Sequence record: OQ427096.1
DNA length: 64,000 bases
Strand: one strand, 5' to 3'
The translations under genes were made by a program, and so were the position numbers. This document shows, piece by piece, positions 7,371-50,638 of the stretch (the stretch's first letter is position 1; each line of letters begins with the position of its first letter). The notes below the pieces were generated by a model that worked only from the letters and a program-made list of their open reading frames with translations, was not told where the DNA came from and ran no database searches.

Positions 7371-7404
7371 TATTATCATATAGGAAATCGTAAAGGAAAG
7401 TAAC

Positions 7405-8088: not shown

Positions 8089-8089
8089 T

Positions 8090-10859: not shown

Positions 10860-10860
10860 T

Positions 10861-12174: not shown

Positions 12175-12178
12175 AGAC

Positions 12179-12217: not shown

Positions 12218-12244
12218 AGTTGGACCATTTAGGAGAACCATTAG

Positions 12245-12616
12245 ATGAAAAAGATTTGGGTAACATTCCGGAAGGCAGGCTTTCACCGCTACCCAGCAGC
12301 CGGCACCCAAGGACTCGAAGACGTCGCGTACCTTGCACACCCTCACCGCCACCTGTTCCACTTCAAGGTAGCCATTGAGGTCTTCCATGACGATCGTGAG
12401 ATCGAGTTCCACCAGTTCCTCAACTTCTTGGAAGAGGCTGTTGCACTCAACGGTCTTGATTACAAGTCGTGTGAGATGATTGCAGATGATATTGCAAAGA
12501 TTGTTGCTTTGAAGTATCCTGCACTCTACCGAACCCTTGAGGTTGAAGTTTCGGAAGATGGCGAGTGCGGTGTTCATGCAATCTATGGCATCAGCAATGG
12601 CGAGGTATTCGGCTAA
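12245..12616 (+). CDS. queD: QueD-like 6-carboxytetrahydropterin synthase (T-fold)
   Basis: HPHRHLFHF, SCEMIA and VSEDGE T-fold motifs. Confidence 0.78.
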   Translation: MKKIWVTFRKAGFHRYPAAGTQGLEDVAYLAHPHRHLFHFKVAIEVFHDDREIEFHQFLNFLEEAVALNGLDYKSCEMIADDIAKIVALKYPALYRTLEVEVSEDGECGVHAIYGISNGEVFG

Positions 12617-13509
12617 TGGCACTGTTCGAAGTATCGGAAATCTTCAGCTCGTTGGAGGGTGAGGCACAATTCACCTTCCATCCGACCACCTACATTCGTT
12701 TTGCACGATGCAACTTCTCTTGTCCGTTGTTCAACAACCCTGAGAAGCTGATTGATGCAAAGGGCTACGCGCCTCTCGATTTCGATCCGAAGGACTATCA
12801 ACGTCTGGAAGATATTCCGCTGATTCACAAAGGCTGCGATAGTCAGTATGCAGTCAATCCGATCTTCGCGCACATGTGGAAGAAGTACGACACGGACGCA
12901 TTGATTGATGCTCTGTTCGAGGTTCTTCCTCAGGGTAAGCTCATCTACAGCACTGGTCTACCTCAGATCATCTCTTTGACTGGAGGTGAGCCTACTTTGA
13001 AGTGGAAGTTCATTCCGGAGATTCTGTTCCATCCTCGAATGAAAGATGCACGTCACTATCTTGTTGAGACGAACTGCTCTGTTCCGTTCAAGGACGAATT
13101 CATCAGCAACATCTACGAGTGGCTTGCACAAGACTCGCGCCGCATTTGGACATGGAGCAATTCTCCGAAGATCTCGTCCAGTGGTGAGGATCGTAAGCAA
13201 GCGATTCGCCCTGAGATTGCTCTTATGCAGCACGTTTTGACGCACAACTTCCCGGGGCGTGTCAATCAGTATTTCAAGTTCGTCGTTGATGGATCTGAGG
13301 CTGATTACGCTGAGGTGAAGGAAGTGATGGAAATCTACTACGCTGCTGGTCTGCCTCGAACTGTTCCGATCTGGATCATGCCTCAGGCTTGCACTGACGA
13401 ACAGCAGAAGGTCACCGCACGCGGAATTGCAAAGCGATGCATTGATGAAGGTTGGTTGTACTCGCACCGTGTGCAGAACGATCTCTGGGGCAATGGCGTT
13501 GGCACCTAA
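12616..13509 (+). CDS. queE: 7-carboxy-7-deazaguanine synthase (radical SAM)
   Basis: EIFSSLEGEA, RFARCNFSC...CD, SLTGGEP, VETN, SPK, KFVV, YSHRVQ; start at ATG 12616. Confidence 0.92.
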   Translation: MALFEVSEIFSSLEGEAQFTFHPTTYIRFARCNFSCPLFNNPEKLIDAKGYAPLDFDPKDYQRLEDIPLIHKGCDSQYAVNPIFAHMWKKYDTDALIDALFEVLPQGKLIYSTGLPQIISLTGGEPTLKWKFIPEILFHPRMKDARHYLVETNCSVPFKDEFISNIYEWLAQDSRRIWTWSNSPKISSSGEDRKQAIRPEIALMQHVLTHNFPGRVNQYFKFVVDGSEADYAEVKEVMEIYYAAGLPRTVPIWIMPQACTDEQQKVTARGIAKRCIDEGWLYSHRVQNDLWGNGVGT

Positions 13510-19681: not shown

Positions 19682-20535
19682 TAGCAGAGAAGAAGCGGAA
19701 GAACATGAAGCACTTCCGAGAAATGAATGATAGAGTGTTCTGTGAATGGATCCTTGGCTATGAAGTCGATCAGCTTGATCTAAGTTGGAAGCTCGACGGA
19801 TTCTTCCTCAGGTTCGGAAAGGACAAAGAGAACAAACCTTGGTTCCAGACTGCGCGCTCTCCTGTACTCTATGATCCAATGGAGATTATCTGGCACTCGC
19901 TTGAGAAAGGTTATGATCACACAGGCATGAGTCGAGCTGAGGTCTATTTCCACCTTATCAAGACAATTTGGGATTCGAACATCATGAATCACTTGCCAGA
20001 AGACTCTGGGTTCGAGTGTGAAGTGTTCGACAAGTCGATGTCTGTCTTGAACAGGGAGAACAACACCAGAACGTTCGTGAACATTCCGTACGACGAAGAG
20101 TTCTTTAAGACAGATCTCACGTTGGCTATCTACAAGCTCATTGAGGCAGCAACAGCTGAGACATGGATTGATGGGTACTACTGTGACCTGAATCTAGACG
20201 ACAACATCCAGACATTTGGCACTCGTTTCAAGATTGACTTCACCGCGAAATACTACTTTGAGTGTGGTGTCAAAGGCATCACAGGCAACGGAAAGCTTCT
20301 TCCTATTCTGGAATCTCGCCGCCAGGCAGATAGAGAAACCAAACTTGGAATGAAGGCAGTGATCGCAACACTCAAAGATCAATTCTGTTACTATGTCTTG
20401 AAGCAGGCTCAAGATCATCACAAGATGGGAAAGAATTTCGAAGGGGTTGTCATCACCGTAAATAAGACAGAGTATAAAATTGTCACAGACTACTTCCGAG
20501 ACTTGATCTACTTCAAGGGAGTGATGGGTGGATAA
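19675..20535 (+). CDS. ATP-dependent ligase-fold (RNA ligase-like) nucleotidyltransferase
   Basis: Motif I SWKLDG, motif III FECEV, motif IV FEGVVI, motif V YKIV. Confidence 0.72.
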   Translation: MLVAEKKRKNMKHFREMNDRVFCEWILGYEVDQLDLSWKLDGFFLRFGKDKENKPWFQTARSPVLYDPMEIIWHSLEKGYDHTGMSRAEVYFHLIKTIWDSNIMNHLPEDSGFECEVFDKSMSVLNRENNTRTFVNIPYDEEFFKTDLTLAIYKLIEAATAETWIDGYYCDLNLDDNIQTFGTRFKIDFTAKYYFECGVKGITGNGKLLPILESRRQADRETKLGMKAVIATLKDQFCYYVLKQAQDHHKMGKNFEGVVITVNKTEYKIVTDYFRDLIYFKGVMGG

Positions 20536-21016
20536 TTTTGACTTGTTCTTCGGAAGGTTCCAGCCGGTTCACAGTGGACATCTTGCTGTTCTCGAGAGGA
20601 TGAACAACCCTGTTGTCGTCATCGTCAAAGGAAAGGTGTCATCGAAGGACACGGAGAAGAACCCTTTCGACTTCGCCTATCAGAAGATGCTTCTAGAGAA
20701 GGTGAAGCCTGATGTTAGGGTGTTCCAGTCAGAGACTGGATATCTCCCGGACATTATCAAGATGCTTGGTGATTGTCCTGATGCTGTCTACTGCGGTTCC
20801 GATCGCATTGGACAGTACAAGGCGCAGATGGAACGCGCCAACAAAGAGCTTGATGAGCTGTGTCTCGTCAGGTTCATTGAAACGGAGCGTGTGACATCTG
20901 CTTCCGTTGTTCGTGAGGCCATCCGGTCTGGCGATAGAAAAGCCTTTAAGGCCAATGTCCCTAGAGCAATCTGGGATCAGTACTCAACAATGAAAAAGAG
21001 GTTAGAAAATGGTTGA
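20528..21016 (+). CDS. Small HxGH cytidylyl/adenylyltransferase-like protein
   Basis: FGRFQPVHSGH, KNPF, GSDR, SASVVR. Confidence 0.85.
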   Translation: MDNFDLFFGRFQPVHSGHLAVLERMNNPVVVIVKGKVSSKDTEKNPFDFAYQKMLLEKVKPDVRVFQSETGYLPDIIKMLGDCPDAVYCGSDRIGQYKAQMERANKELDELCLVRFIETERVTSASVVREAIRSGDRKAFKANVPRAIWDQYSTMKKRLENG

Positions 21017-33506: not shown

Positions 33507-36500
33507 ATGATCCTACAAGAGAACAGCTTTTATTCAGACCAATCTGGTCTCGCTACGTTGCTCACAAACAAGCAACTCGTAGCCGATATTTTCTATATCA
33601 ATTTCCTCGGGTTTGCTGGACTCCTTAAGATCAAGGACGCTCCTGCGCTGATGACCTATGTCAAGGGTTTGGGCAAGCTCCAGCTTTCCAACATGACAGA
33701 CACCAATGCTGATTGGAGCCTGGCTATCAAGCTGGCACATGATGCAGGTATCATCAATATGGTCGCTGCCAACATGGCAACGAAGTTCCTTGCACTGGTC
33801 AAGAGCGGAAAGATTCGCTCAGCTGACCTTAAGGACGATCCAATCCGAGATATCATCAAGGCTTGCCGTGTAATCAGCAACAAGCCTTCACCCCGTATCT
33901 ATCAGGCTGTTCAAGACTTTGTTGATGCAAAGGACCAGCTAGAGACGACAACCGTCAAGCTCTGGAAGCTGTCTGCACGTCCAGAGCTAATGACCGCGGC
34001 TAAGGAATTCCGTGAACAGATCACCCTGGGTGGTTATTCGTCCGCATTCCTGAAACACCAGTGGGCAAATGGAACTGCAACGACGCCTGCTCCAGCTGTA
34101 GCTGTTCAGCAGCCACCAGCAAAGGGCCAGCGTGGTTCGTTGCCACCTCAGGGTGCTGCACATGGTTCCGACTCGGATTACATGGCTGCTCTGCTTCATG
34201 TGTTCAAGCTCAAGGGTGGTATTCATAGCTACCTCGAACGTTTCGGCTTCAAGGGACACTTTGACGTTGATCGCTTCAAGAAGGCTGTCGCATCTCCTGA
34301 GTTCGTTCTGTCTCATGGCTATCACGTGCCTTGGGAGCAGCATCCGTTTGTCCAATGGATTCGTAAAAAGGATCCGTCGGCTTCGGCAGCTGTGCTCAAG
34401 ATCCTCAATGATAAGGATCGTCAGACAGGTGCAATCGCTGTAGCAACTCAGGTATCGAATACTGCACCTCAGGCACCTAAGCCAGCTGCTGTAATCCAGA
34501 CTGTCGTTGCAAATCGCCAAGAGCCGATTGTGACTAATGAGTCTATCTCTGAGATGTACCTCAACGGTTTTGATCCTAAGCTTCATGCGTTGATGATGAA
34601 GTATCATTGGCCTAAGGGCGAAGAAGCGAACATCATCAAGTCGAATCTTCCTAAGGTTCTGAGCGCCCTCAAGACATTCGAGGTTGATGAGCTTAAGAAG
34701 CCTCATGGTCGAATTGAACAGAGCGAATATACGCAGAGCACCTTTGCGCGTATGCTTCTTGGTAACGGCGTGATGCCATCCCAGATCAACGGACCTATCT
34801 ACAACACTCTGTTGAAGTCGGGCGAGAGAAAGGACGCTGATGCTGTATTCAATCTTCTGATCGATTACAACAACGCATCCACTTTGAAGCAGAACGCGTT
34901 TGGTGGCGACTTCGGTAATGACCCAGTTACGACTGCGGTGTCCCGCCTGTTTGATGGTGATGGTGTTGATTTCATTCTTGATCACCTGACACAGATCAAC
35001 AGCGTAGGATTCCAGCCAATCGTCTATGATGCAGGTAAGCATCTTTGGATCGGAAACGATGCCGAAACAGAGATGAACCGTAACCTGATCCAATGCTTGA
35101 TGTTGCCTACGTCAACCCTGGACGGAATTGTTCGCAACATCGAGGCAACGTTTGCTCGTCTTGATATCAGAACTGGTCGAACCATCGGAAAGAACCTTGC
35201 AGTTGACAAGGAATCCTTCGATAACAAGGCGTCTGCAAAGGTCAAGAAGCTCGTCGATGCAGTGAATAAGGAAGGTTACGTTGATATTTCCCTGAAGAAA
35301 TTCGAAGGTGATACGATGGAGATCCTCGACCTCCTGACAGTAGCTAAGAAGGTCACGCAGGGTGCTTCCTATGCAATGTCTGATCACTTTGTTTCTCTGT
35401 TGGGCGATGCAATGGCTGGCAAGTTTGATATCACGCCAGTGATCAAGGACGAGGAAGACCTGTTCCTTATCTTCAAGGCATTGCAGCAAGCAGCATTCTA
35501 CATGAATGCAACATCCCGTGCTACGGCTGGAACTATCATGCCTTGGCTGTATGAGAAGATGGCAGCTGTTGGATCTTTGAACTGGAAGATGAACAGAGCG
35601 CCTAACCCATATGGTGAGTATCCTTTCCCACAGGCTACTAACTATTTCAAGTATCTGCTCGAAAAGGGACACACCACAGCGGCACGCCATGTTGCTCCAT
35701 GGATGATCTACTACGGAACAGGTAGCGATATCTTCAAGATGATCATTGCGCAGTTCCCTGAGCTGAAGGAAGAAGTCTTCAAGCGTTCTGGACAGATCGG
35801 TCATGGCGGTACGACATTTGCTGCGATTCTTGATCAAAAGTTTGATCCTGTTGCTATGCCTTATATCAGCCTCGACGCGCTGACCTCATTTGTTCGTTCG
35901 ATTGCAATGCACGGATCAATTGAAGATGCTGTCAAGGCTGCACGCTGGGCAAGAGCAAAGATCATGAAGGAACAACCTGATCGTAGGCCTTGGGAACAAG
36001 CTGGTCCTTCTATGGTAGGTCTTCTGGGAACTGCATGGTTCGTTGAGCCAAGCGATCCTCACTATGATGAAGCGCTCAAGGTGGCTTCAAAGTGGCTGAT
36101 CTCTACTCTCAAGCAACAATATAGCGAAAGTGACATCAAACTGTTCCAAGCCTACAACCCAGAGTTCTGGAAGGTATGGATTTCAGAAAAGAAGAAGGGC
36201 GCTGAGAATAGTCCTCACGCTACAACCTCACTCCGTGGTATGATGGACACTTCTGAGTATTCGGAACTCTACATCAACTGCCTGAAAGGCCAGGGTCTAA
36301 ATGCAATCAAGGCAAACCTGATTGATTCGACCACAGGTTGGGCTGCTCAGTTGATGCAGGTTGCGGATTCGGATGACATTACGATTGACGCCAAGAAGGA
36401 GCTTGTTCGTAGATTCGCTCCTGCGATGGAAGTCAACGGCGTTCACACCATCCGAGATAAGTCGCACCGTGACTCGCTCAACAAGAACTTTGCTGATGTT

Positions 36501-37694
36501 CTGCTCGACGTCTATGACTCGGATAAGGACCTTGCAGACAAAATCTTTGCTGACCTGCCTCGAACCACTCGTACTCTGATCGTAAAGATGCAGGGTGAGA
36601 TGGCTTACATCGAAGCAATCAAGGACGACCTCTACAAGCATCCTATCAAGCCTGACTTCCCGCTTGACCATGCCCGTATTCGTACGATCTTGAAGTACAA
36701 CAACCTGGCTATCCGAGTCACGTCTAATCGAAACATCGTTCAGACCATCGGTGATATTGATTCGGCAGCTAAGTCTTCGATCAGCAAGGCTCTTGTGGAC
36801 CTCAAGGTCTCCGAAGTGAAACAGGATGAGACGGCGCTTGAACTCGAGACAATTCGTCTCAATAAGTTCCGAAACAACAAGCACGGCGAAGTTGCATTCA
36901 AGGTTCTCAAATCGTTTGACGTTGCATTCCCAGGCGCAAGCAAGAGAATTGCTGAATTCCGAAAGAACAATCCTCAGGATGGTACGCTTGATCCTGTGTT
37001 CCACGGAACAGGTACAATTGCCGCTTCGATGGTTCTGCGTAACGGATTCCAGATCATTCCTGCAAACGACTCCTCAGCTGTTGGTCGTATGCTTGGTAAC
37101 GGTATCTACTTCTCCAATGTCATCGACAAGGCACAGCAGTACGTCGGCGACAAGGGTGGTGGCATCACGCGTAGCTATGGTACACGTGGTTACATCTTCG
37201 AGATGGAAGCCGAACTAGGAAAGAACCCTAAGGACTATCGTTCCGCTGGTCTCGGTCGCGACTCTATCCGTTCTCCGGAATGGGCAGTGTTTGATCCGGA
37301 CAATCAGCTTCGCATCTACAAGGCATACTACATTGAGCTTGTAAGCCTCAATGCGGTTAAGGCGATGGCTGCAAAGCACAACACCAAGTTGAACGAAGCG
37401 GTAGGTAGCTCATTTGAAGATTACATGATGGAGAAAACTGTGGATACAAAGGCAACATCGAAGTTCTGGTTCATGGGCGATTCGTTGCCCAAGTCGATGA
37501 CGGAAACTTGCGAAGTCAGCGAGTTCAAGTCGAAGCGAAACGTCTACACAGAACCATCGTGGGACGGCGGTACGATCGTTTCTATCGAACATTCGCTAGA
37601 CATTGAGCCGGTAACGATTTCGATTGATGACACGGCGAAGTGGTTGTTCAACAAGCCAGATGAAGCAAAGTTGTTCTTCGATCTGATGAACTGA
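33507..37694 (+). CDS. Large Alt-like protein with a C-terminal PARP-type (H-Y-E) ADP-ribosyltransferase domain
   Basis: VFHGTG, GRMLGNGIYFS, AQQY, SPEWAVF. Confidence 0.82.
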   Translation: MILQENSFYSDQSGLATLLTNKQLVADIFYINFLGFAGLLKIKDAPALMTYVKGLGKLQLSNMTDTNADWSLAIKLAHDAGIINMVAANMATKFLALVKSGKIRSADLKDDPIRDIIKACRVISNKPSPRIYQAVQDFVDAKDQLETTTVKLWKLSARPELMTAAKEFREQITLGGYSSAFLKHQWANGTATTPAPAVAVQQPPAKGQRGSLPPQGAAHGSDSDYMAALLHVFKLKGGIHSYLERFGFKGHFDVDRFKKAVASPEFVLSHGYHVPWEQHPFVQWIRKKDPSASAAVLKILNDKDRQTGAIAVATQVSNTAPQAPKPAAVIQTVVANRQEPIVTNESISEMYLNGFDPKLHALMMKYHWPKGEEANIIKSNLPKVLSALKTFEVDELKKPHGRIEQSEYTQSTFARMLLGNGVMPSQINGPIYNTLLKSGERKDADAVFNLLIDYNNASTLKQNAFGGDFGNDPVTTAVSRLFDGDGVDFILDHLTQINSVGFQPIVYDAGKHLWIGNDAETEMNRNLIQCLMLPTSTLDGIVRNIEATFARLDIRTGRTIGKNLAVDKESFDNKASAKVKKLVDAVNKEGYVDISLKKFEGDTMEILDLLTVAKKVTQGASYAMSDHFVSLLGDAMAGKFDITPVIKDEEDLFLIFKALQQAAFYMNATSRATAGTIMPWLYEKMAAVGSLNWKMNRAPNPYGEYPFPQATNYFKYLLEKGHTTAARHVAPWMIYYGTGSDIFKMIIAQFPELKEEVFKRSGQIGHGGTTFAAILDQKFDPVAMPYISLDALTSFVRSIAMHGSIEDAVKAARWARAKIMKEQPDRRPWEQAGPSMVGLLGTAWFVEPSDPHYDEALKVASKWLISTLKQQYSESDIKLFQAYNPEFWKVWISEKKKGAENSPHATTSLRGMMDTSEYSELYINCLKGQGLNAIKANLIDSTTGWAAQLMQVADSDDITIDAKKELVRRFAPAMEVNGVHTIRDKSHRDSLNKNFADVLLDVYDSDKDLADKIFADLPRTTRTLIVKMQGEMAYIEAIKDDLYKHPIKPDFPLDHARIRTILKYNNLAIRVTSNRNIVQTIGDIDSAAKSSISKALVDLKVSEVKQDETALELETIRLNKFRNNKHGEVAFKVLKSFDVAFPGASKRIAEFRKNNPQDGTLDPVFHGTGTIAASMVLRNGFQIIPANDSSAVGRMLGNGIYFSNVIDKAQQYVGDKGGGITRSYGTRGYIFEMEAELGKNPKDYRSAGLGRDSIRSPEWAVFDPDNQLRIYKAYYIELVSLNAVKAMAAKHNTKLNEAVGSSFEDYMMEKTVDTKATSKFWFMGDSLPKSMTETCEVSEFKSKRNVYTEPSWDGGTIVSIEHSLDIEPVTISIDDTAKWLFNKPDEAKLFFDLMN

Positions 37695-42742: not shown

Positions 42743-43021
42743 ATGAAGATCAAGACCCTCCTCGCAGCCGTACTGATGACCGTCGCACTTTCTGGGTGCG
42801 GCGAGATCATAGAAGAATCAGAAATCATTCCTGGCGCAGAAGCTGAGATGGTAGCGATGTGCAATGTGAATGGAGGCTTTGTTCGCGGATGGGTTACACC
42901 GATGAACAAATACTCAGCAGGCAAGGTTTCGATCCTCGAACAGTACAGGACAGCCTACCACGTTGAATGTGTCAATGGTGCGAAGATTGACAAGCTATTC
43001 GAAGGCAAGACAATCAGATAA
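42743..43021 (+). CDS. Lipoprotein
   Basis: Signal peptide with lipobox LSG-C; behind promoter 42709-36. Confidence 0.75.
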   Translation: MKIKTLLAAVLMTVALSGCGEIIEESEIIPGAEAEMVAMCNVNGGFVRGWVTPMNKYSAGKVSILEQYRTAYHVECVNGAKIDKLFEGKTIR

Positions 43022-43047: not shown

Positions 43048-44163
43048 ATGGAGTCAGCAATTTACAGGGACCTCGACCCTGAGGTGGCAGCAGAGTGCGG
43101 CTACTTCGAACCGAAGGAACCCTTCAATCAGATCTTCTCGCAGCCTTGGGCGCGCGCTGCGATCAGCGCATACGACCAGATCATCTACTACCCGGGCAGT
43201 TTCGGCACGTTCCATGATGGTCACATCTCAGTGATCAAGCGTGCTCTGCGAAAGTACCCCGGCGCCTGGCTCGTGATCGCACCGAGCAATTCAGACTACG
43301 CTTCCCAGAAGTACGGCGCATGGTCGGAGCTCGCATCGAATAAGCATCGCTACGACACCATCAAGAAGGTGTTGGATAAGCATGGCATCACTGCCTCGAT
43401 CGACATTGATCCGATGCTCAACAACCGCTGTGATCAGAACTTCACTGACCAGCTGGATGCCTTCCTGGCTGCGGGTAAGCGCGCCGGCATCTACGACATG
43501 GCCAAGCCTCCGGTCATCCTGTGTGGCAAGGATCGTGCTGACTTCCAGAACCTCAACAACTACACCGACAAGGTTATCGTCGAGTGGTTTGAGGATACCA
43601 CTGGGCTGAGCACTTCCAAGCTCGAGAACAAGAAGCGGATGAAGAAGCATCTCATCCTGCGCTGCGTGAACGAGGAAGAGTTCAATCTGTTCTGCGAGTA
43701 TTTCGAGGACCAGTACCTCACCATCCAGCCGTATTACCTGCACGATGAAATCGAGTCTGCCAAGAAGGCAGCTGTGATGATTGGGGCGACCCACACCAAC
43801 TGCAAGGAATACGCTGGCTTCTTGCCTTACATCAAGATCAGCAGGCATTTCAAGAACCCGCTCGAGAACGGAACCGTGAACAATTGGTTCCTTCCGAATG
43901 ACGCGGTTCTGCTTGACTCGGACATCTTTACCGGAACCACGCAGGCTTGGGTTGAGTCTATGGGCGGAAAGCTCCATGGACTGATCAATCTCAAGGACTG
44001 GCACGGTGTCTGGGAGCTCCTGGATATCAGCGACTTCCGAAAGAAAGAATGGGCGTATCCCTTTACGGATATCTCCAGCCGCTGTAGCATGCAGGCATTC
44101 GATACCGCCTTCCACGACCACTTCAACGAATTCAAGGAAAAGCTCAGCCATGTCCATCAGTGA
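43048..44163 (+). CDS. HxGH nucleotidyltransferase (NadD/NadM-like) fused to a type I PRTase-like domain
   Basis: YYPGSFGTFHDGH, GLSTSK, C-terminal VLLDSDIFTGTT PRPP-loop-like motif. Confidence 0.7.
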   Translation: MESAIYRDLDPEVAAECGYFEPKEPFNQIFSQPWARAAISAYDQIIYYPGSFGTFHDGHISVIKRALRKYPGAWLVIAPSNSDYASQKYGAWSELASNKHRYDTIKKVLDKHGITASIDIDPMLNNRCDQNFTDQLDAFLAAGKRAGIYDMAKPPVILCGKDRADFQNLNNYTDKVIVEWFEDTTGLSTSKLENKKRMKKHLILRCVNEEEFNLFCEYFEDQYLTIQPYYLHDEIESAKKAAVMIGATHTNCKEYAGFLPYIKISRHFKNPLENGTVNNWFLPNDAVLLDSDIFTGTTQAWVESMGGKLHGLINLKDWHGVWELLDISDFRKKEWAYPFTDISSRCSMQAFDTAFHDHFNEFKEKLSHVHQ

Positions 44164-44875
44164 AATCATCTCGCCGAACGTTAAGGCCATCCTTGCTCTT
44201 GGCATCGAACGCGATACGCCTTTTGAGCTTGATGCTCTCCTGCACAAGAATGGTGTCATCGAAATCAACACGTCGCTCGACCTTCTCCCCGAAGTGGATC
44301 GCGCGTTCGAGATTTTCGACCAGCTTGGTGCTGTGTATCCGGTCTCGGTGACCGGTCTGGAAAACGTGGACAGCGGCATTGGTTCGCATCGTTTCTGCGC
44401 GTGGGATGGCGAATTCGCGGCGCTCCTGACCGAGGTGGTCAAGCTGATGGAGACTCCTGAACTGATCCAGATTGGTGATCATCTCTGGGAGTTTGAGAGC
44501 GTCTCGAAGTATTTCCGTTTCATGCGGTACGATCAGGGCGGTGAGCATTTCCCGCACTACGACAGCGATTTCGTTGTCTACGATCATCTGAAAACCTTCG
44601 GACAGTCGGTTCGCTACGCCACGAAGTATTCGCTGGTGATGTACTTCAACGACTGCGAGTCGGGTGAAATCGCTTTCATCGACAATGATCCGAACCCGAC
44701 AAAGGGTGATTGGAATCGTCAGGCGACTGATGCTGAGATCTCCTTGCGCATCAAGCCGGCAAAGGGAAAGATCGTTCTCTTCCCGCACACTCTCTGCCAC
44801 ACTGTGCTCCCCTTCACCGATAAGGACAGCCAGCGCTTCATCGTGCGCGGCGACCTGATCTTCACCCAGGCATAA
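44150..44875 (+). CDS. 2-oxoglutarate/Fe(II) oxygenase (P4H-like)
   Basis: RYDQGGEHFPHYD (HxD), LVMYFND, KPAKGKIVLFPH.LCH.V, RFIVR. Confidence 0.88.
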   Translation: MSISEIISPNVKAILALGIERDTPFELDALLHKNGVIEINTSLDLLPEVDRAFEIFDQLGAVYPVSVTGLENVDSGIGSHRFCAWDGEFAALLTEVVKLMETPELIQIGDHLWEFESVSKYFRFMRYDQGGEHFPHYDSDFVVYDHLKTFGQSVRYATKYSLVMYFNDCESGEIAFIDNDPNPTKGDWNRQATDAEISLRIKPAKGKIVLFPHTLCHTVLPFTDKDSQRFIVRGDLIFTQA

Positions 44876-44878
44876 GAC

Positions 44879-45709
44879 ATGACTCTCGTCCCTGTAAACC
44901 CGAACGAACTGGAAATGTCGGTTCGGATGTTCAAGCACATGTTCCGAAGGAAGGATCCGTATCAGAAGATTCTTACCCTGAAGAACTACTTCTTGAACTG
45001 GAACATCAAGAAGGTTGTAATGGGCGTCTCGGGCGGCGTTGATTCGGCACTGGTTCTCTTCCTCCTGGCTCATATCCCGGAAGTTGAAGTCCATGCAGTG
45101 ACGATCGATTTCGACACCTACAGCGATGTCTTTGACCAGGGCTATATCGAGCTCTTGCAGCTGGCTACAACTCGTTTCCGAAACGTGAAGTGGCACAAGA
45201 AAGATCTGACTCTGGCTTTCAGCGAGATGATGGTCGCCCTGGACCTCGAGAAAAGTTCTGATGAAGTCTTCGCCAACACCAGCTATGCGATGCGTTACCT
45301 GGGCTTCTTCGCCTACGCTCAAGCACTCGGCGGCGTGACCATCGGCACCACCAACCTGGATGAAATGGGCTACGTGGGCTGGTTCGGGAAGAACTCGGAT
45401 ATGATGGTCGACATCCAGCCGATTTCGACCCTGCACAAGTTCGAAGTAATCGAGTGGGCAAGGCTGTTGGGCGTACCTGAGCGTGTTGCTGCCCGCGTTC
45501 CGACAGGTGACTTGGTCAACGGTACCAGTGATGAAGAAAACTTCGGCTGCACCTATGACGAACTTTCTTTCTACACGCACCACCGTCTCAAAGACCCGGA
45601 CATGGAAATTTCGCCCTTCATGGAAGCGCATTTCGAAGGTGTAGAAAGGTTGCGAAAGAAAAATCTGCACAAATACCAGGGCCAGAAGTTCAACCCAGTC
45701 TTCCTGTAA
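44879..45709 (+). CDS. nadE: NH3-dependent NAD synthetase-like protein
   Basis: MGVSGGVDSA, GTTNLDE...GWFGK, PISTLHKFEV, PTGDL...TSDE...G.TYDEL, NLHK. Confidence 0.9.
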   Translation: MTLVPVNPNELEMSVRMFKHMFRRKDPYQKILTLKNYFLNWNIKKVVMGVSGGVDSALVLFLLAHIPEVEVHAVTIDFDTYSDVFDQGYIELLQLATTRFRNVKWHKKDLTLAFSEMMVALDLEKSSDEVFANTSYAMRYLGFFAYAQALGGVTIGTTNLDEMGYVGWFGKNSDMMVDIQPISTLHKFEVIEWARLLGVPERVAARVPTGDLVNGTSDEENFGCTYDELSFYTHHRLKDPDMEISPFMEAHFEGVERLRKKNLHKYQGQKFNPVFL

Positions 45710-45761: not shown

Positions 45762-46904
45762 ATGGAAATCGCGCTCTGGCTCTGCTTGATCCCGATCACG
45801 TGGGCGGCAATAGCACATTTCGCATTCAAAAGGACGATCACCTGGAAAGAAGGTCTGCTCCAGGGCGGCGGCATCGCACTCGTGGTTCTTCTGATCTACG
45901 GCTGCATGGCATACAGCAATACCGCCGATCACGAAATCCTCAACGGACAGGTGACGGGAAAGAAGCAGACCTGGACCAGCTGTTCGCACTCGTATTCGTG
46001 TAACTGCTACACGACTTGCAGTGGCACAGGTTCAAGTCGATCCTGCACCCGACATTGCAGCACATGCTACGAGCACTCCAACGACTGGGATTGGGACGTC
46101 TTCACGACGGTAGGTAACATCGAGATCGATCGCGTTGACCGTCGTGGTAGCCGTGAACCACCTCGTTGGACTGCGGTACAGATCGGTGAACATGCTGCGG
46201 TGACGCACACCTACACCAACTATGTCAAGGCAGCTCCGAGCAGCTTGTTCAACGTCAAGCTGGCGGAAACCGAGGCAAAGTCCAAGGCTGCGATAATCCC
46301 TCAGTACCCACGCATCTACGACTACTATCGCGTTGACCACACCATTGATATCCAGGCAGGTGTCGCGAACAGAAAAGCCTGGGATGCAGAGCTGGACGAA
46401 GTCCTGAAAACTATGGGTTCGGCGCGACAAGTGAACGTCGTGTTGGTCTTCGTAGGCAAGCAAGGTCGGGAGTACAAAGACACGTTGGAGCGTGCTTGGC
46501 TCGGCGGCAAGAAGAATGATGTGGTGATTGTGGCAGGCGTCACAGGCACCAAGATCGACTGGGTTGAAGCCTTCACGTTTGGCAAGTCCTCCGGTAACGG
46601 AATGCTCGCCGTCAAGATGCGCGACGAGTTGCAGAAGTACGGTACCACTGAAAATGCGAAGGAAGGCGTGGCTGTAATCACAAAGGTGATCGCATCCGAC
46701 TTCCATCGTAAGAACATGAAAGACTACGAATACCTGAAGGCTGAGGGTGGACCTTCGGCAAAGCAAGTTTCCTGGCTGGTTGGTATTGTCCTGGTCCTCT
46801 TGATGGTGACAACTTTCCTTCTTCACAAGTACGACGTGTTCAACGAGGAGTTCTACGACAGGCACCCGAACATTCGCTACATCCGAAATAGTTTTCGTCG
46901 TTAA
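45762..46904 (+). CDS. Membrane protein with a Cys-rich loop and TPM-like periplasmic domain
   Basis: Two N-terminal TMs, CSHSYSCNCYTTC...CTRHCSTC, GGKKNDVVIV, C-terminal TM. Confidence 0.7.
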   Translation: MEIALWLCLIPITWAAIAHFAFKRTITWKEGLLQGGGIALVVLLIYGCMAYSNTADHEILNGQVTGKKQTWTSCSHSYSCNCYTTCSGTGSSRSCTRHCSTCYEHSNDWDWDVFTTVGNIEIDRVDRRGSREPPRWTAVQIGEHAAVTHTYTNYVKAAPSSLFNVKLAETEAKSKAAIIPQYPRIYDYYRVDHTIDIQAGVANRKAWDAELDEVLKTMGSARQVNVVLVFVGKQGREYKDTLERAWLGGKKNDVVIVAGVTGTKIDWVEAFTFGKSSGNGMLAVKMRDELQKYGTTENAKEGVAVITKVIASDFHRKNMKDYEYLKAEGGPSAKQVSWLVGIVLVLLMVTTFLLHKYDVFNEEFYDRHPNIRYIRNSFRR

Positions 46905-46934
46905 TCCAAAATCACATAAACCCAACAAAGGTAA

Positions 46935-47534
46935 TTGATAATGAACATTCGTGGCAACAAGGGCTCGGCGTGGATTGCAGTGCTGGTCTTCCTGGGTATC
47001 CTGGCACTAGGCGCAGTCTTCGCTGTAGGCAGCTATGTCAGCGCAGCCAACTACGGCAACGAAGCCGAGCAGCGCCTGGAAGCGAAGTGGCAGGACAATC
47101 AGAACGTGCTGGGCCAGTACACCATCAAGATCGGTGAAATGGCACAGGTGCCGGAAATCGCGCGTGATGACCTGAAGGAAGTTCTGAAGGCAACTTTCGA
47201 AGGTCGCTATGGAAGTGAAGGCGTGAGCCGTGGTGCAGGTGAACAGAAGACCTTCCAGTGGTTGCAGGAACAGAATCCGAATCTGAACCCGGAACTCTAC
47301 AACCGACTCCAGCAGACGATGGAAGCTGGTCGTAACGAGTTCAAGGTCTCTCAGACGGAACTGTTGGATGAGAAGCGCGCCTATCAGACGAACCTGGGCT
47401 ATGTCTGGAAGGGCTTCTGGATGAAGCTGGCAGGCTACCCGAAGGTCGATCTGTCGAAGTACAAGGTTGTGGTCGGGGCTGACACGGCACAGAAGTTCGA
47501 GACCGGCGTTGACACTGGCGTCAAGCTGCGGTAA
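46935..47534 (+). CDS. LemA-like membrane-anchored coiled-coil protein
   Basis: N-terminal TM, helical body, KLAGYP near the C-terminus. Confidence 0.6.
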   Translation: MIMNIRGNKGSAWIAVLVFLGILALGAVFAVGSYVSAANYGNEAEQRLEAKWQDNQNVLGQYTIKIGEMAQVPEIARDDLKEVLKATFEGRYGSEGVSRGAGEQKTFQWLQEQNPNLNPELYNRLQQTMEAGRNEFKVSQTELLDEKRAYQTNLGYVWKGFWMKLAGYPKVDLSKYKVVVGADTAQKFETGVDTGVKLR

Positions 47535-47626: not shown

Positions 47627-48676
47627 ATGCAGCATGATCTCGCAGTTTTCATCGGGCGTTTCCAGCCTTTCCATCTGGGCCACCTCCACGCTATTGAGGA
47701 AGGCCTCAAGCTCGCCAAGAAGGTTCTCATCCTGATCGGTGACACCGGTGGTCCTCGTGGCCTCAAGAATCCCTGGACCGCAGAAGAGCGGAAGCAGATG
47801 ATTCTGGATTCGCTAGGCACCTACCAGCGCGAACTCGTAATGTTTGACATTGCATACGACATGCCGTCCAACACGGAATGGGCTGGTCAGATTCAGAGCA
47901 TTGTCAGCAACGCCTCGAACTGGCATAAGCTGCCCAGCGTAATTCTGATCGGTCACGAGAAGGACGCGTCGAGCTTCTATCTCAAGATGTTCCCGCAGTG
48001 GAAGCACATCGACACCGGCTTCGAAGAACTGGAAAGCGGACTTCTCCGCAAGTACAACGCCACCGACATTCGCAAGATGGTCTGGACGAACACGCTGCAT
48101 TACGCAACGGGTCTCCTGCATCCGACCACGCTGACCTACCTGGTCAATCACATCAAGCACAACCCAGCTATCTATGAAGAGTTTCTCGAGGAATACGGCG
48201 CCATACAGGCTTATCGCAAGGCGTGGGCAGGTTCGCCGTTCCCGCCGATGTTCGTCACCACTGACTGCGTGGTTATCCAGAGTGGCCATATTCTTCTGAT
48301 CAAGCGAGGCGACCGACCTGGAAAGGGTCTTTGGGCGTTGCCCGGTGGCTTCCTGGATCAGACCGAGTCCATCCAGGATGGTGCTCTGCGTGAACTGAAG
48401 GAAGAGACGAACATTCACCTGCAGGATGATGTGCTTCGCCGTTGCATTGTTCGCACTTTCGTCCATGATCGTGCAGGCGGTGTCAGTGAAGAAGACCGTG
48501 GCAGAATCATTACGCATGTGCATGTCGTCAAGCTTGCCGACGGGAAGCCACTGGCCAAGGTCAAGGGCGGCGATGACGCAGCCGAAGCACGCTGGGTTCC
48601 GTTGGGCGAAATCAACTACCGTGAGATCTTCTCCGACCACGGAAAGATCATTGACCGCGCCCTGAGTGGCGTCTGA
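47627..48676 (+). CDS. nadM: Bifunctional NMN adenylyltransferase / Nudix ADP-ribose pyrophosphatase
   Basis: FIGRFQPFHLGH; Nudix box WALPGGF.DQTE....ALRELKEET; GGDDA. Confidence 0.96.
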   Translation: MQHDLAVFIGRFQPFHLGHLHAIEEGLKLAKKVLILIGDTGGPRGLKNPWTAEERKQMILDSLGTYQRELVMFDIAYDMPSNTEWAGQIQSIVSNASNWHKLPSVILIGHEKDASSFYLKMFPQWKHIDTGFEELESGLLRKYNATDIRKMVWTNTLHYATGLLHPTTLTYLVNHIKHNPAIYEEFLEEYGAIQAYRKAWAGSPFPPMFVTTDCVVIQSGHILLIKRGDRPGKGLWALPGGFLDQTESIQDGALRELKEETNIHLQDDVLRRCIVRTFVHDRAGGVSEEDRGRIITHVHVVKLADGKPLAKVKGGDDAAEARWVPLGEINYREIFSDHGKIIDRALSGV

Positions 48677-48685
48677 GGAATTATC

Positions 48686-49144
48686 ATGAAGGACGTTATC
48701 AACGGCTTTTTCGAAGAAGCAGAACGTTTGCAGGCTCTGGCAGAAGAACAGCGCAGCAAGGCTGCTGCAATCCTGACACCGCTGTTTGATCTCCAGCATC
48801 GGCTTGCATGGTTTGTTCACTGCGAGCCTGAGTTCAAAGAACTGGAAAAGTGGTATCGCAAGCCGCGTGATAGGTTCGCAACCAATGCGAACCGTCAGCA
48901 TTCTTACTACACTTTCGACGGAAGTTTCTACGATCTCTGTGAATGGAGTGACGGTGACTCGGCTGACTCCATTGAGCTGCATCCTATCTTCCTGACAGAT
49001 GCTTCTGAGGAAGAGAAGAAGGAAGTAATTCGACAGGCATATCGTGCTGATATCGCAGCTGTAGAAAATCAGAAGCAACGCGCGAAAGAAGCTGAGCTGG
49101 AAAAGGCTCGCAAGCTTCTCGCTGAAAACGGTGTGTCTTTCTAA
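48686..49144 (+). CDS. Hypothetical protein
   Basis: GAGG RBS. Confidence 0.65.
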   Translation: MKDVINGFFEEAERLQALAEEQRSKAAAILTPLFDLQHRLAWFVHCEPEFKELEKWYRKPRDRFATNANRQHSYYTFDGSFYDLCEWSDGDSADSIELHPIFLTDASEEEKKEVIRQAYRADIAAVENQKQRAKEAELEKARKLLAENGVSF

Positions 49145-49192: not shown

Positions 49193-50638
49193 ATGATTTT
49201 CAATCCGATCCTTGCAACAGACAGCTACAAGTTCTCGCACTTCATGCAGTACCCGAAGGGTACCACTATCGTCAAGAGTTATGTCACGGCGCGTGGCAGC
49301 AAGATTCCTGGCGTTACCGCAGTGGTTTGTGCTGGTCTGCAAATCTTCATTCACGAATATCTCAGCAAGCGCGTGACCAAGAATCACGTCGATCAGGCTG
49401 AGGCATTCTGTGCCAAGCACGGCGTTCCTTTCAACCGCGAAGGTTGGGACCTGATCGTCAACGATCACAACGGCTACCTGCCTGTCGAGATTCGCTCGGT
49501 TGAGGAAGGTACGCCGGTGCCGCTCAATGAGCTTATGATCTCCGTAATCAACACTGACGAGCGTCTGCCGTGGGTGACCTCGTATATCGAGACGCTCCTG
49601 CTGAGCTATGTCTGGTATGCCTCGACTGTGGCAACCAAGAGCCGCGAAATCAAGAAGGTCATCAAGCAGTACCTGGACATCACGTCGGACAATGCTGATG
49701 TGGAACTTCCGTTCAAGCTGCACGACTTCGGTTACCGTGGTGCAACTCCTGGCGCAGCTCATGTTGGTGCCTTCGCGCACCTGATCAACTTCATGGGTAC
49801 TGATACCGTCGCCGGCATCGAAGCTGCAATGGAGTACTACGGTTCGGATGTCTGTGGTTACAGCATCTCGGCTTCGGAGCATTCGACGATGACCAGTTGG
49901 GGTCGCGATGGTGAGTTCGATGCCTACCGCAACATGGTTGACTCCTACGCCAAGCCCGGTGCGATCTTCGCCTGCGTGATCGACAGCTACGACACCTTCG
50001 CAGCAATCGATATGTTCTGTGAAGACCGTTGTGCAGGTGGCTCGCTCCTGGACATCGTCAAGAACCGCGGTGCAACCATCGTGCTCCGCCCTGATAGCGG
50101 TGACCCGATCCAGATGCCAATTGACGTCATCAAGTACCTGATGGAAAAGGTCGGCTACGAGATCAACAACAAGGGTTACAAGGTCCTGCCGAGCCATGTT
50201 CGAGTGATTCAGGGCGATGGCATCGATATTGAAGACGTTGAGCACATCCTGGAGACCCTGGTCGAGGATGAAAAGATCAGCGCCTCGAACATCGCATTTG
50301 GCATGGGTGGCGGACTCCTTCAGAAGGTGAACCGTGATACGTTCAAGTTTGCTATGAAGGCGTGCCTGGCATACATCAACGGCGAAAAGGTAGACATCAT
50401 CAAGGATCCGGTCACTGACCCTGGCAAGAAGTCGAAGGCAGGCGACCTGAGCGTCTATCACAATCCGGAAACTGGAGAGTGGAAGACCATCACTGAAGGT
50501 TCGCTGGATTCGTTCGCTTTCAACAAGCCTTCGAGCAATTGGTATCGCAAGGACTATGTTGTCTATAGCCACTACGGTCGCGATACTTTCTTCGACTATG
50601 TGGACATGGATACTGTTCGTAGGAATGCTGCTCTTTAA
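49193..50638 (+). CDS. nadV: Nicotinamide phosphoribosyltransferase
   Basis: TDSYKFSH, LHDFGYRG, SISASEHS, VIDSYD, RPDSGDP, IQGDG, FGMGGGLLQ, RDT, KKSKAG. Confidence 0.97.
   Translation: MIFNPILATDSYKFSHFMQYPKGTTIVKSYVTARGSKIPGVTAVVCAGLQIFIHEYLSKRVTKNHVDQAEAFCAKHGVPFNREGWDLIVNDHNGYLPVEIRSVEEGTPVPLNELMISVINTDERLPWVTSYIETLLLSYVWYASTVATKSREIKKVIKQYLDITSDNADVELPFKLHDFGYRGATPGAAHVGAFAHLINFMGTDTVAGIEAAMEYYGSDVCGYSISASEHSTMTSWGRDGEFDAYRNMVDSYAKPGAIFACVIDSYDTFAAIDMFCEDRCAGGSLLDIVKNRGATIVLRPDSGDPIQMPIDVIKYLMEKVGYEINNKGYKVLPSHVRVIQGDGIDIEDVEHILETLVEDEKISASNIAFGMGGGLLQKVNRDTFKFAMKACLAYINGEKVDIIKDPVTDPGKKSKAGDLSVYHNPETGEWKTITEGSLDSFAFNKPSSNWYRKDYVVYSHYGRDTFFDYVDMDTVRRNAAL

Follow-up and report, generated by a model that had tools for sequence, protein, structure and literature searches.

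One phage-encoded route of NAD synthesis is NARP2, in which NadV (a type II phosphoribosyltransferase, PRTase) and NadM-Nudix work from a pyridine base, nicotinamide, and PRPP, and which needs no amidation step or oxygenase. Two further NAD-rebuilding modules have been reported in phages: NARP1, in which Adps and Namat start from ADP-ribose (10.1101/2024.02.11.579819), and NARP3, in which PnuC and a NadR-like protein start from imported nicotinamide riboside (published August 2026; PMC13464706). The initial annotation of the locus described here had named NARP1 and NARP2 as the known routes and had remarked that neither uses NadE or an oxygenase; the latter part stands, neither being mentioned in the NARP paper (10.1101/2024.02.11.579819), but with the publication of NARP3 these two are no longer the only routes known. 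Other points of comparison are the Preiss–Handler pathway (PncB, then NadD, then NadE), the Francisella tularensis route (NaMN to NMN by NadE*, with NadM) and the two-subunit NAD synthetases (for example, of Thermus), in which a NadE S-subunit is paired with a separate glutaminase G-subunit (PMC3376133). Here, we describe a trio of genes from Xanthomonas phage X1 that appears, by sequence comparison, to be one module that many other large phages also conserve, and that has no description in the NARP1–3 papers or in a 2022 survey of viral NAD metabolism.

In the window (the whole 64,000-nucleotide stretch of OQ427096.1 that was analysed), the three coupled genes reported in the initial annotation were recovered as three plus-strand open reading frames with overlapping or abutting frames (Table 1), g1 and g2 overlapping by 14 nt and g2 and g3 lying 3 nt apart. 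The start of g2 was placed at the ATG at 44150 because the N-terminal 'SPNV' motif of its homologues aligns directly after it; a longer GTG open reading frame from 44006 did not fit this alignment and was rejected.

Table 1 Features of the trio (43048-45709 of the OQ427096.1 stretch, Xanthomonas phage X1) and of two neighbours outside it.
Feature	Position	Strand	Basis or remarks
g1 (371 aa)	43048-44163	+	ORF and annotation; WEM34357.1, 'hypothetical protein' in GenBank
g1 N-domain (aa 44-196), HIGH-motif nucleotidyltransferase, NadD/NMNAT-like	43177-43635	+	PF01467, NF005519, Foldseek
HxGH motif H56-D-G-H59	43213-43224	+	Alignment A1
g1 C-domain (aa 197-371), divergent type I PRTase-like	43636-44160	+	hhalign to relatives, weak fold matches
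PRPP-loop-like motif VLLDSDIFTGTT (g1 aa 287-298)	43906-43941	+	Alignment, predicted secondary structure
g2 (241 aa), 2OG-Fe(II) oxygenase, P4H/PHD-like	44150-44875	+	WEM34358.1
Fe(II)-binding H136-Y-D138 of g2	44555-44563	+	Invariant in alignment A3
Distal His H217 and 2OG-binding Arg region R229, R233 of g2	44798-44848	+	Invariant in alignment A3
g3 (276 aa), NadE-family NH3-dependent amidating PP-loop ATPase	44879-45709	+	WEM34359.1
PP-loop SGGVDS (g3 aa 51-56)	45029-45046	+	Aligned with SGGIDS of 3FIU
NadM-Nudix, neighbour outside module	47627-48676	+	NCBIfam, Pfam, annotation; NARP2-type
NadV, neighbour outside module	49193-50638	+	NCBIfam, Pfam, annotation; NARP2-type

A neighbourhood survey showed conserved synteny of the trio at each of the 12 core-family loci whose flanks were long enough (X1, BUDD, V45v66, L005, L007, L010, L012, L013, L015, L026, L029 and L030), at 34-54% identity and with a single change of gene order (L005); because the same layout recurs in every such locus, the arrangement is far beyond chance. 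The conserved linkage that had been anticipated for the three genes is thus borne out, and gene fusions add to it: two independent fusion architectures were found among relatives of the trio, one joining NadE to g1 (P0167) and the other uniting NadE, oxygenase, nucleotidyltransferase (NTase) and PRTase in a single 1208-aa protein (P0273). The trio also occurs in a distant group (L022 and L036), with its order permuted and its genes unseparated; flanking genes differ wholly between loci while the trio is kept together; and L008 and L033, both decayed loci, have lost it as a unit. Two exceptions were observed, a g1-like gene standing alone (L021) and a NadE–oxygenase pair within 7 kb of which no g1-like gene was found (L035), and the tightest association is that of NadE with the oxygenase (L035, L036 and P0273). 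Purifying selection acts on each of the three genes (dN/dS 0.15-0.19; X1 versus phage BUDD: g1, 0.18; g2, 0.15; g3, 0.19); this, with the family-level domain identities, intact catalytic motifs, synteny and fusions, is established.

For g1, a search of 5.8e9 proteins yielded 21 full-length homologues, an exhaustive HMM search gave 46 clusters with E < 1e-30, and the AF2 model of the protein has a pLDDT of 88.6. Its N-domain scored 30.1 bits against Pfam CTP_transf_like (PF01467; cut-off 21), had Foldseek matches to CCT, NadD and PPAT, and carries both signature motifs of the HIGH-motif nucleotidyltransferase superfamily: FHDGH at aa 55-59 (H56, G58 and H59 invariant across the 21 homologues in alignment A1) and TTGLSTS at aa 184-190 (S188 and S190 invariant), the latter taking an ISSTQIR-type (ISSTxxR) form in distant relatives, with further motifs at APSNSDY..KYG, NFTD, GKDR and GLSTS. 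The NadD model NF005519 (E 4.9e-5) ranked after a generic cytidylyl/adenylyltransferase model, and its score fell below the equivalog cut-off (22.4 versus 315), as did that of the distant relative P0273 against TIGR00482 (64 versus 112); NadD/NMNAT is among the families closest to g1, which is not a member by cut-off.

The C-domain of g1 (pLDDT 89.8) had no sequence match in Pfam or the PDB, and PF00156 matched none of 20 g1-family members in Pfam searches. The PRTase fold, whose absence from structure predictions would have counted against the initial annotation, recurs consistently, although weakly, among its best PDB fold matches (XGPRT, PRPS1 and OPRT; E 0.056-0.9, TM 0.32-0.40), and in BFVD the best match was gp162 of Acinetobacter phage vB_AbaM_ME3 (E 1e-5, TM 0.62), followed by weak ones to Hpt, Apt and Prs. 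Taking the type I PRPP loop as four hydrophobic residues, two acidic residues, xx, (T/S)G, x and T on a strand-loop-helix, VLLDSDIFTGTT is loop-like and non-canonical, with DSD in place of DD/ED, that is, with a Ser splitting the acidic pair; D290, S291, D292, G296 and T298 vary little or not at all among g1 homologues, and the motif lies on a predicted strand (287-293) followed by a helix (297-304). Profile comparison aligned g1 to a distant phage family of 400-520 aa over 331 columns covering both domains (hhalign 99.8%, E 5e-29), placing VLLDSDIFTGTT against DDDIxTGxT. In that family, the best model for the N-domain is TIGR00482 (NadD/NMNAT; E 1e-8 to 1.8e-17), the C-domain matches APRT/HPT NCBIfam models across the loop region (E 1.5e-5 to 1e-3), and the loops are canonical for type I PRTases (DDDxxTGxT; for example, YILIDDDIHTGGT). 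The profile link of g1 to PRTases is transitive, running from the core family through the distant group to the APRT/HPT models, and the homology to these canonical-loop relatives, together with the weak but recurrent fold matches, supports the original reading of g1 as an HxGH adenylyltransferase with a PRPP-loop-like C-domain.

The intact HxD...H...R dioxygenase attributed to g2 was likewise recovered, with the facial triad and Arg (H136, D138, H217 and R229/R233) invariant among nine homologues and a score above cut-off against PF13640 (37.2 bits; cut-off 27). A profile of these nine homologues matched a prolyl 4-hydroxylase in the PDB (6T8M, E 1.1e-6), and more than 160 clusters of g2 homologues were found, none with a name; the conserved GSxR and DW motifs of the family could suit a small molecule as well as a protein as the substrate. 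For g3, the claim of a complete NH3-dependent NAD synthetase holds for the NadE domain (TIGR00552, 113.6 bits, cut-off 63.65; PF02540, E 5e-30), the P-loop and the catalytic residues (D55, T157, E162, K187, T209 and D218 are retained, aligned with the FtNadE catalytic site as listed in PMC12143786), but not at the level of full-length equivalogs, where cut-offs were missed (NF010587, 104.7 versus 255; NF001979, 66.5 versus 250). The protein is single-domain, without a glutaminase domain, and its family matches are of the PP-loop type only. In a tree of 28 sequences, all trio-linked NadEs fell into a clade of their own, separate from the three solved NadEs (Ft, Ph and Pa), with which the NadE-like proteins of P-TIM68 and HTVC008M clustered; the genes for the latter two lie beside those for UDP-glucose dehydrogenase, an epimerase, glycosyltransferases and a carbamoyltransferase. 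Because of this separate clade and these sugar-cluster genes, NadE-family membership alone leaves the substrate unfixed, and the family may use other carboxylates.

The domains and their linkage fit best the logic that had been put forward at the outset, from deamidated base to mononucleotide to dinucleotide to amide, and we put at about even chances the proposal that the trio makes a dinucleotide carrying an amide, most probably NAD+, out of a free carboxylated base and host PRPP, ATP and ammonia; the substrate, product, step order and biological role are what we infer here. The type-I-PRTase-like C-domain of g1 would join the base, most simply nicotinate, to PRPP to give a mononucleotide (NaMN); its NadD/NMNAT-like N-domain would adenylylate NaMN to NaAD; and g3 would adenylate the carboxylate and amidate it with NH3 to yield NAD+, the last two steps possibly being reversed, as in Francisella (NaMN to NMN to NAD). 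The oxygenase would act in the same pathway or complex, where it might make or unmask the base, modify an intermediate or hydroxylate a partner protein; the repair or conversion of a damaged pyridine intermediate, suggested in the initial annotation, is a conjectural role. If correct, this would be a phage Preiss–Handler-like route with a non-canonical PRTase that needs neither NadV nor NadM, and by which a phage could draw on the pool of deamidated pyridines to restore NAD, either in the course of infection or once a NADase-based defence has acted. That the module is aimed at defences that deamidate nicotinamide or NMN is speculation, no such defence having been met with in the literature consulted. 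Several observations run counter to an NAD route. Full-length equivalog cut-offs for NadD, NMNAT, NadE and PRTase were all missed. The PRPP loop of X1 is non-canonical, its PRTase fold match is statistically weak, and the trio NadEs stand in a separate clade. To our knowledge, the nicotinate, nicotinamide and quinolinate PRTases are all type II, so a type I PRTase for a pyridine base would be unprecedented. The oxygenase is no less conserved than the other two genes, and pairs with NadE on its own in L035, although in a plain nicotinate-to-NAD route it is superfluous.

Relative to the Preiss–Handler pathway, the trio would share all three steps, with a NadD/NMNAT-like adenylyltransferase and a NadE-family amidating enzyme, but its PRTase is type-I-like, whereas PncB has the type II fold (PF04095, carried here by the neighbouring NadV); in addition, the trio is phage-encoded, its PRTase and NTase are fused, the oxygenase is an obligate companion and the product is predicted. 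With NARP2 it would share phage-encoded synthesis of NAD from a pyridine base and PRPP, but it pairs a type-I-like PRTase with a NadD/NMNAT-like NTase and contains neither NadV nor NadM-Nudix, which sets it outside NARP2 as defined. Genes for NadM and NadV do lie 2-3.5 kb downstream of the trio in X1, BUDD and L012; in many trio loci, however, NadM is missing from the vicinity, and the trio is not NARP2-dependent, because the complete genome of Variovorax phage V45v66 carries it with no NadV or NadM found. As proposed for the trio, NARP1 and NARP3 rebuild NAD in phages, but their components are non-homologous to it and neither includes NadE or an oxygenase: against Pfam and NCBIfam profiles, the trio had no PRPS, NAMPT, PnuC or P-loop kinase match and so lies outside both definitions. 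Adps folds like PRPS, as a type I PRTase (PMC13586617), which puts it distantly in one fold class with the g1 C-domain, whose own match to that fold is weak. Two-subunit NAD synthetases resemble the trio in encoding a single-domain NadE adjacent to a dedicated partner, the partner being a nitrilase-type glutaminase in those synthetases and a 2OG-Fe(II) oxygenase in the trio. Phage ME3 (gp156/gp162/gp163) has a g2-like oxygenase (29% identity) and, directly upstream of NadE, the stand-alone PRT-like protein matched in BFVD (hhalign 98%), but its architecture is split and its PRPP loop degenerate (LYDHDIVNGIG); no NTase partner was found near the split module, gp164 being unrelated.

Other genes near the trio and its relatives also touch on NAD or ADP-ribose. 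A NAPRTase-family gene lies 5 kb upstream of the trio in L015, a giant ADP-ribosyltransferase is encoded upstream of it in X1 and L012, an ADP-ribosylglycohydrolase gene adjoins the solitary g1-like gene of L021, and a macro domain is encoded close to the split module of ME3.

The same chemistry might instead lead to another carboxamide nucleotide or dinucleotide, with a base made or altered by the oxygenase; one possibility is an analogue of NAD that resists cleavage by immune NADases or inhibits them. This would account for the strict conservation of the oxygenase and its place in the larger fusion, canonical NAD synthesis needing none, for the separate clade of the trio NadEs, for a type I PRTase domain whose nearest relatives are purine/pyrimidine PRTases as opposed to the type II fold used for pyridines, and for the presence in X1 of NadV and NadM, by which it is already equipped for ordinary NAD. 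However, no candidate base or product presents itself, the NadD/NMNAT and NadE likenesses and the NAD/ADP-ribose neighbours are most simply read as NAD, and the occurrence of the trio alone in V45v66 fits a route to an essential cofactor; we regard a product other than NAD as unlikely. In a Francisella-like order, g3 would first turn NaMN into NMN, as an NMN synthetase, after which the g1 NTase, or NadM where it is present, would adenylylate NMN. W41 and Q148 of X1 g3 align with Y27 and Q133 of FtNadE, which we take to be specificity determinants. Among solved structures, g3 comes closest to 3FIU (72.0 bits, E 6.2e-19), the Francisella NMN synthetase (PMC10607449), and X1 also has NadM, with which Francisella pairs its NMN-synthetase NadE (PMC3376133). 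The margin over ordinary NadEs is nonetheless trivial (69.9 bits for 2E18 and 65.4 for 4XFD), the Ft, Ph and Pa NadEs group together in the tree away from the trio clade, and an archaeal NadE found alongside NadM is a normal NAD synthetase (PMC3376133); we hold this order to be unlikely. Unlike in the Francisella route, NadM is absent from V45v66 and from the vicinity of many trio loci.

A sugar-nucleotide or other non-nucleobase route, in which the NTase would work on a sugar or alcohol phosphate, activating it, and a uronate or comparable carboxylate would receive an amide from the NadE-like enzyme, for surface or DNA modification, is suggested by the sugar-type clusters that hold the P-TIM68 and HTVC008M genes and by the resemblance of TTGLSTS in core-family g1 to the cytidylyltransferase motif RTEGISTS, CCT being among the best PDB sequence and fold matches of g1. 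We consider it very improbable: no sugar-pathway genes stand beside the trio in the loci examined, distant relatives have ISSTxxR-type motifs and match NadD/NMNAT best, and the PRPP-loop domain has no obvious use in sugar activation. The initial annotation had offered a different substrate for g3, namely 7-carboxy-7-deazaguanine, amidated to 7-amido-7-deazaguanine (CDG to ADG) for phage DNA modification, and X1 does have FolE, TGT/DpdA-like and QueE-like genes with no Pfam QueC. The faint QueC match of g3 (PF06508, 16.9 bits) is, however, below the cut-off of 22, and g3 has a single Cys (C224), whereas QueC (7-cyano-7-deazaguanine synthase) has a four-Cys zinc site. The deazaguanine cluster lies 30 kb from the trio with a PP-loop ATPase of its own next to FolE (PAPS_reduct, 8090-8623), and the fusion partners of the family are NMNAT/PRTase-like and include no deazaguanine enzymes. 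Because V45v66 carries the trio with no FolE, QueE or DpdA match in its complete genome, this alternative is disfavoured and seems to us extremely unlikely. We attach equally little credence to the absence of any common pathway, that is, to three independent auxiliary genes co-travelling in a variable region of T4-like genomes: gene order is broadly kept in such genomes and there are the two exceptions (L021 and L035), but the flanks change wholly around an intact trio, its order is permuted without separation (L005, L022 and L036), and fusions arose in two architectures among genes whose frames overlap or abut.

The GC-richness ascribed to the trio proved real but not specific to it: its GC content of 0.533 exceeds the mean of 0.497 for the window and stands at the 97.7th percentile among equal-sized windows, with GC3 of 0.69-0.75 in the three genes, but the trio is not the sole GC-rich stretch, because four longer downstream genes (45762-46904, 46935-47534, NadM and NadV, up to 50638) match its composition, from which the short open reading frame at 48686-49144 (152 aa) departs in lacking the GC3-rich signature.

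The strongest result of our analysis is the linkage of three genes encoding a nucleotidyltransferase (NTase) fused to a phosphoribosyltransferase (PRTase)-like domain (g1), a 2OG-Fe(II) oxygenase (g2) and a NadE-family enzyme (g3). In Xanthomonas phage X1, the region 43048–45709, described in the initial annotation as holding three coupled, GC-richer genes, proved to be filled exactly by three plus-strand open reading frames (ORFs; 14-nt overlap between g1 and g2, 3-nt gap between g2 and g3), all with significant family matches. The window spans bases 62001–126000 of the X1 record (OQ427096.1), from a T4-like myovirus of 200 kb. The region was 100% identical to this record and 86% identical to phage BUDD; between these phages, dN/dS was 0.15–0.19 for the trio genes and similar for NadM and NadV. 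The GC enrichment was likewise real (0.533 in the trio versus 0.497 in the window; trio GC3 0.69–0.75), with a composition common to the longer downstream genes (45762–46904, 46935–47534, NadM–Nudix at 47627–48676 and NadV at 49193–50638) and not found in the short ORF at 48686–49144.

Coordinates of the trio genes in the window, of decayed cassettes and of NadE-like genes in sugar clusters
Feature	Position	Strand	Description
g1	43048-44163	+	ORF; GenBank 'hypothetical protein'
g2	44150-44875	+	ORF; GenBank '2OG-Fe(II) oxygenase'
g3	44879-45709	+	ORF; GenBank 'NAD(+) synthase'
Cassette remnant	L008 2524-3607		g1 N-part fused to oxygenase C-half, frameshift; NadE intact
Cassette remnant	L033 6001-6338		g1 fragment (aa 12-79) abutting NadE fragment (aa 243-276)
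'NAD synthetase' in sugar cluster	L023 5013-5753		P-TIM68
'NAD synthetase' in sugar cluster	L024 4968-5726		HTVC008M

A neighbourhood survey bore out the conservation of this linkage: the trio genes were adjacent in every core-family locus (close full-length g1 homologues) with enough flanking sequence (X1, BUDD, Variovorax phage V45v66, L005, L007, L010, L012, L013, L015, L026, L029 and L030), at 34–54% identity, amid unrelated flanking genes and, in L005, with NadE first. The order also varied among more distant g1-like loci (oxygenase–g1-like–NadE in L022; NadE–oxygenase–g1-like in L036), and divergent large-phage lineages carrying the module number well over a hundred, with GC contents of 25% to 56%. 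Two fusions were recovered as well: NadE with g1 (P0167, 688 aa) and NadE with oxygenase, NTase and PRT-like domains (P0273, 1208 aa), the latter near an inorganic pyrophosphatase gene. Exceptions were a g1-like gene (507 aa) with NadE and oxygenase absent within 8 kb (L021), a NadE–oxygenase pair with a g1-like gene absent within 7 kb (L035) and Acinetobacter phage ME3, where the module is split. Two further loci (L008 and L033) are decayed remnants, with the cassette deleted across gene boundaries; P0020, considered as a functional NTase–oxygenase fusion, was rejected as a deletion and frameshift remnant. IMG/VR yielded one locus only, and no relative was found in 185,579 GTDB genomes by a pattern-based scan, which leaves their absence there unproven.

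After the P0273 gene come two PhyH-family oxygenase genes, with the pyrophosphatase at the contig end (L020, 11404–13142 and 19141–19414). In L021 (8001–11370 and 15848–16951), the g1-like gene adjoins an ADP-ribosylglycohydrolase and a SET-domain gene, and 6 kb away lies the gene for a second NadD-like protein, extended by 210 aa at its N terminus. The L036 trio (7001–10268 of a 128-kb contig, GCA_054403855.1; 522-aa g1-like protein) neighbours RCC1/WD40, DUF4116, molybdopterin oxidoreductase and HTH genes, a context that is not obviously phage, and may be non-phage.

Pfam matched the first third of g1 only (CTP_transf_like, residues 47–111), and the family is rare (21 clusters in a word-based search of 5.8 billion proteins; 46 clusters at E < 1 × 10−30 in an exhaustive HMM search), with full-length members of 363–430 aa conserved across both halves. 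An AF2 model of g1 was confident (pLDDT 88.6), and its N-terminal domain resembled CCT, NadD and PPAT structures. Because whole-protein Foldseek matches were to the NTase domain alone, the C-terminal domain was modelled separately (pLDDT 89.8); its best folds were all of the type I PRTase kind (E. coli XGPRT, human PRPS1 and OPRT), in keeping with the PRTase proposed for this domain, but the matches were weak (E at least 0.056, TM at most 0.40). Pfam searches with all 20 members and a PDB profile search returned chance matches only for this domain; in BFVD, one strong match, to a 212-aa ME3 protein encoded directly upstream of the ME3 NadE, was followed by weak Hpt, Apt and Prs matches. ME3 gp164, considered as the missing NTase, was rejected (hhalign probability 0.2%).

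A further set of approximately 100 distant g1-like proteins (400–520 aa) came from the same HMM search, and a profile built from 19 of them aligned to the core family along 331 columns spanning both domains (hhalign 99.8%, E = 5 × 10−29). In this distant group, the N-terminal domain best matched TIGR00482 (nicotinate/nicotinamide-nucleotide adenylyltransferase; E from 1 × 10−8 to 2 × 10−17) and has ISSTxxR-type motifs, the C-terminal domain matched adenine/hypoxanthine PRTase models (E from 1.5 × 10−5 to 1 × 10−3), and the PRPP loops are textbook-like (YILIDDDIHTGGT, YVLFDDDQMTGRT and YTLLDDDSLTGLT), with the X1 loop VLLDSDIFTGTT aligned to them by hhalign. Given this alignment and the domain matches and loops of the distant group, g1 belongs, by profile homology and as a divergent member, to a family of phage fusions of NadD/NMNAT-like and type-I-PRTase-like domains. 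The structural reading in the initial annotation was largely right. None of g1 or the distant-group proteins reached a curated equivalog cut-off; g1 is predicted to work like NadD or APRT, not to be a member of either family. A third HIGH-motif nucleotidyltransferase in the window (20528–21016, 162 aa) had weak matches to NadM and archaeal NMNAT models.

The oxygenase is intact, as first read: g2 is of the P4H/PHD type (PF13640 above cut-off), with H136-x-D138, H217 and R229/R233 invariant in 9 homologues. Its homologue clusters number more than 160, all of them unnamed metagenomic proteins, and among solved structures it is closest to 6T8M, a small prolyl hydroxylase of the PHD type (E = 1 × 10−6). 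Conservation of g2 matches that of the other trio genes, and its tightest pairing is with NadE. First read as a complete NAD synthetase, g3 belongs to the NadE family as a PP-loop enzyme of one domain; it has SGGVDS and scores above the TIGR00552 cut-off but below those of full-length equivalogs. It retains the residues aligned to those that a review gives for the FtNadE catalytic site. Its top solved relative is a Francisella NMN synthetase (3FIU), which leads an ordinary archaeal NadE by only 2 bits. W41 and Q148 of g3 align with Y27 and Q133 of FtNadE, presumed specificity residues together with R236; we give this correspondence little weight.

All trio-linked NadEs, core and distant, formed one well-supported clade separate from three solved NadEs, which are the only true references in the tree because P0126–P0141, entered as 'cell-like NadE' outgroups, grouped with the distant trio-linked NadEs (contigs were looked up for two of these, P0128 and P0129, and each adjoins a g2-like oxygenase). 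Clustering with the solved NadEs were NadE-like proteins of cyanophage P-TIM68 and pelagiphage HTVC008M, whose genes adjoin UDP-glucose dehydrogenase, epimerase, glycosyltransferase and carbamoyltransferase genes and whose substrate is probably a sugar acid (uronate), not NaAD. A phage 'NAD synthase' annotation is thus not proof of NAD synthesis.

Together, the three genes plausibly constitute a phage NAD-building module. The PRT-like domain of g1 would join a base to PRPP, its NTase domain would convert the mononucleotide, with ATP, to a dinucleotide, and g3 would convert a carboxylate, with ATP and NH3, to a carboxamide, either before or after adenylylation; PPi would be released by all three non-oxygenase activities, and a linear route fits. 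The constant presence of NadE, which a nicotinamide-using PRTase would make superfluous, suggests that the base is carboxylated (deamidated). With nicotinate as base, the route would be Preiss–Handler-like with a different PRTase fold, a plausible pathway assignment to which we give an even chance. The strict conservation of the oxygenase argues that the module is not a simple copy of that pathway. As the oxygenase is unneeded in the canonical route yet equally conserved and NadE-paired, we keep a lower but still substantial probability for a base or product other than the canonical one. On this less probable view, the module would either make a non-canonical NAD-like dinucleotide with a hydroxylated or otherwise altered carboxamide base or use a pyridine (or ammonia) precursor made by the oxygenase in a near-complete de novo route. 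The phage could use an altered dinucleotide as an NADase-resistant cofactor; alternatively, the molecule could decoy or inhibit immune NADases of the TIR/SIR2 type. Under either reading of the oxygenase, the pathway would contain a type I PRTase for a class of base on which no enzyme of this type is known to act.

It had also been proposed that g3 amidates CDG to ADG for 7-deazaguanine DNA modification. This is disfavoured: the deazaguanine cluster of X1 lies 30 kb from the trio and encodes a PP-loop ATPase of its own adjacent to FolE, and V45v66 (complete, 159.6 kb) has the trio with no tblastn match (E ≤ 1 × 10−3) to X1 FolE, QueE, DpdA-like, NadV or NadM, so the module is neither tied to 7-deazaguanine modification nor dependent on NARP2-type genes. 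The X1 cluster (7405–13509) comprises FolE, GT1 glycosyltransferase (9699–10859), TGT/DpdA-like and QueE-like genes, with a PAPS-reductase-type PP-loop ATPase (8090–8623) where QueC might be expected; 4 of its 8 proteins had no Pfam match.

Depletion of NAD is one of the major defences of bacteria against phages. Three phage NAD-rebuilding routes have been described since 2024, all on the amidated branch (from nicotinamide, ADP-ribose or nicotinamide riboside): NARP1 and NARP2, which the initial annotation had listed and whose preprint mentions no NadE, oxygenase or nicotinic acid, and NARP3 (PnuC and a NadR-like enzyme), absent from that annotation. NadV, NadM and NadR are the sole phage NAD-synthesis enzymes given in a 2022 survey that covered NAD/ADP-ribose systems across 21,191 viral proteomes, and a 2026 X1 genome paper reports DRAM-v KO calls for pncB, nadM, nadD, nadE and NAMPT, suggesting that they may counter NAD depletion, without analysing these genes or their linkage. 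We found no description of an NMNAT–PRTase fusion or of the trio in the literature searched. Unlike NARP1–3, the proposed module would run through the deamidated branch; its predicted PRTase fold differs from that of the Preiss–Handler pathway, and its oxygenase would be an addition to that pathway without counterpart in textbook NAD synthesis. If the module functions in this way, it would add a fourth route to phage NAD building, with an unprecedented NMNAT–type I PRTase fusion and possibly a new enzyme activity, that of a type I PRTase for a pyridine base, and would explain how phages lacking NadV and NadM, such as V45v66, could maintain their NAD supply. The oxygenase poses a concrete biochemical question and could make the module more than a NAD-building one; were the product not NAD, a phage-specific nucleotide would be more interesting still.

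In several lineages, NAD and ADP-ribose genes recur near the trio or g1-like genes (NadM with NadV, NAPRTase-family, ADP-ribosylglycohydrolase, macro domain and large ADP-ribosyltransferases). A 1395-aa ADP-ribosyltransferase (33507–37694) lies ~5 kb upstream of the X1 trio, and a PARP-domain homologue is also upstream in L012. A sigma-70-like promoter just upstream of g1 (42987–43014) was rejected as evidence for an operon start because BUDD does not conserve its hexamers and the scan total was not above shuffles. A 92-aa ORF there (42743–43021) has a lipoprotein-like signal peptide (…TVALSGC), with similar, unannotated DNA in BUDD. Between the trio and NadM (45762–47534) lie phrog_2087 (380 aa), with hydrophobic ends and a Cys-rich stretch apparent from its sequence, and phrog_1383 (199 aa; 'virion structural protein'); only in the lineage of X1, BUDD, L012 and L027 does this pair follow the trio.
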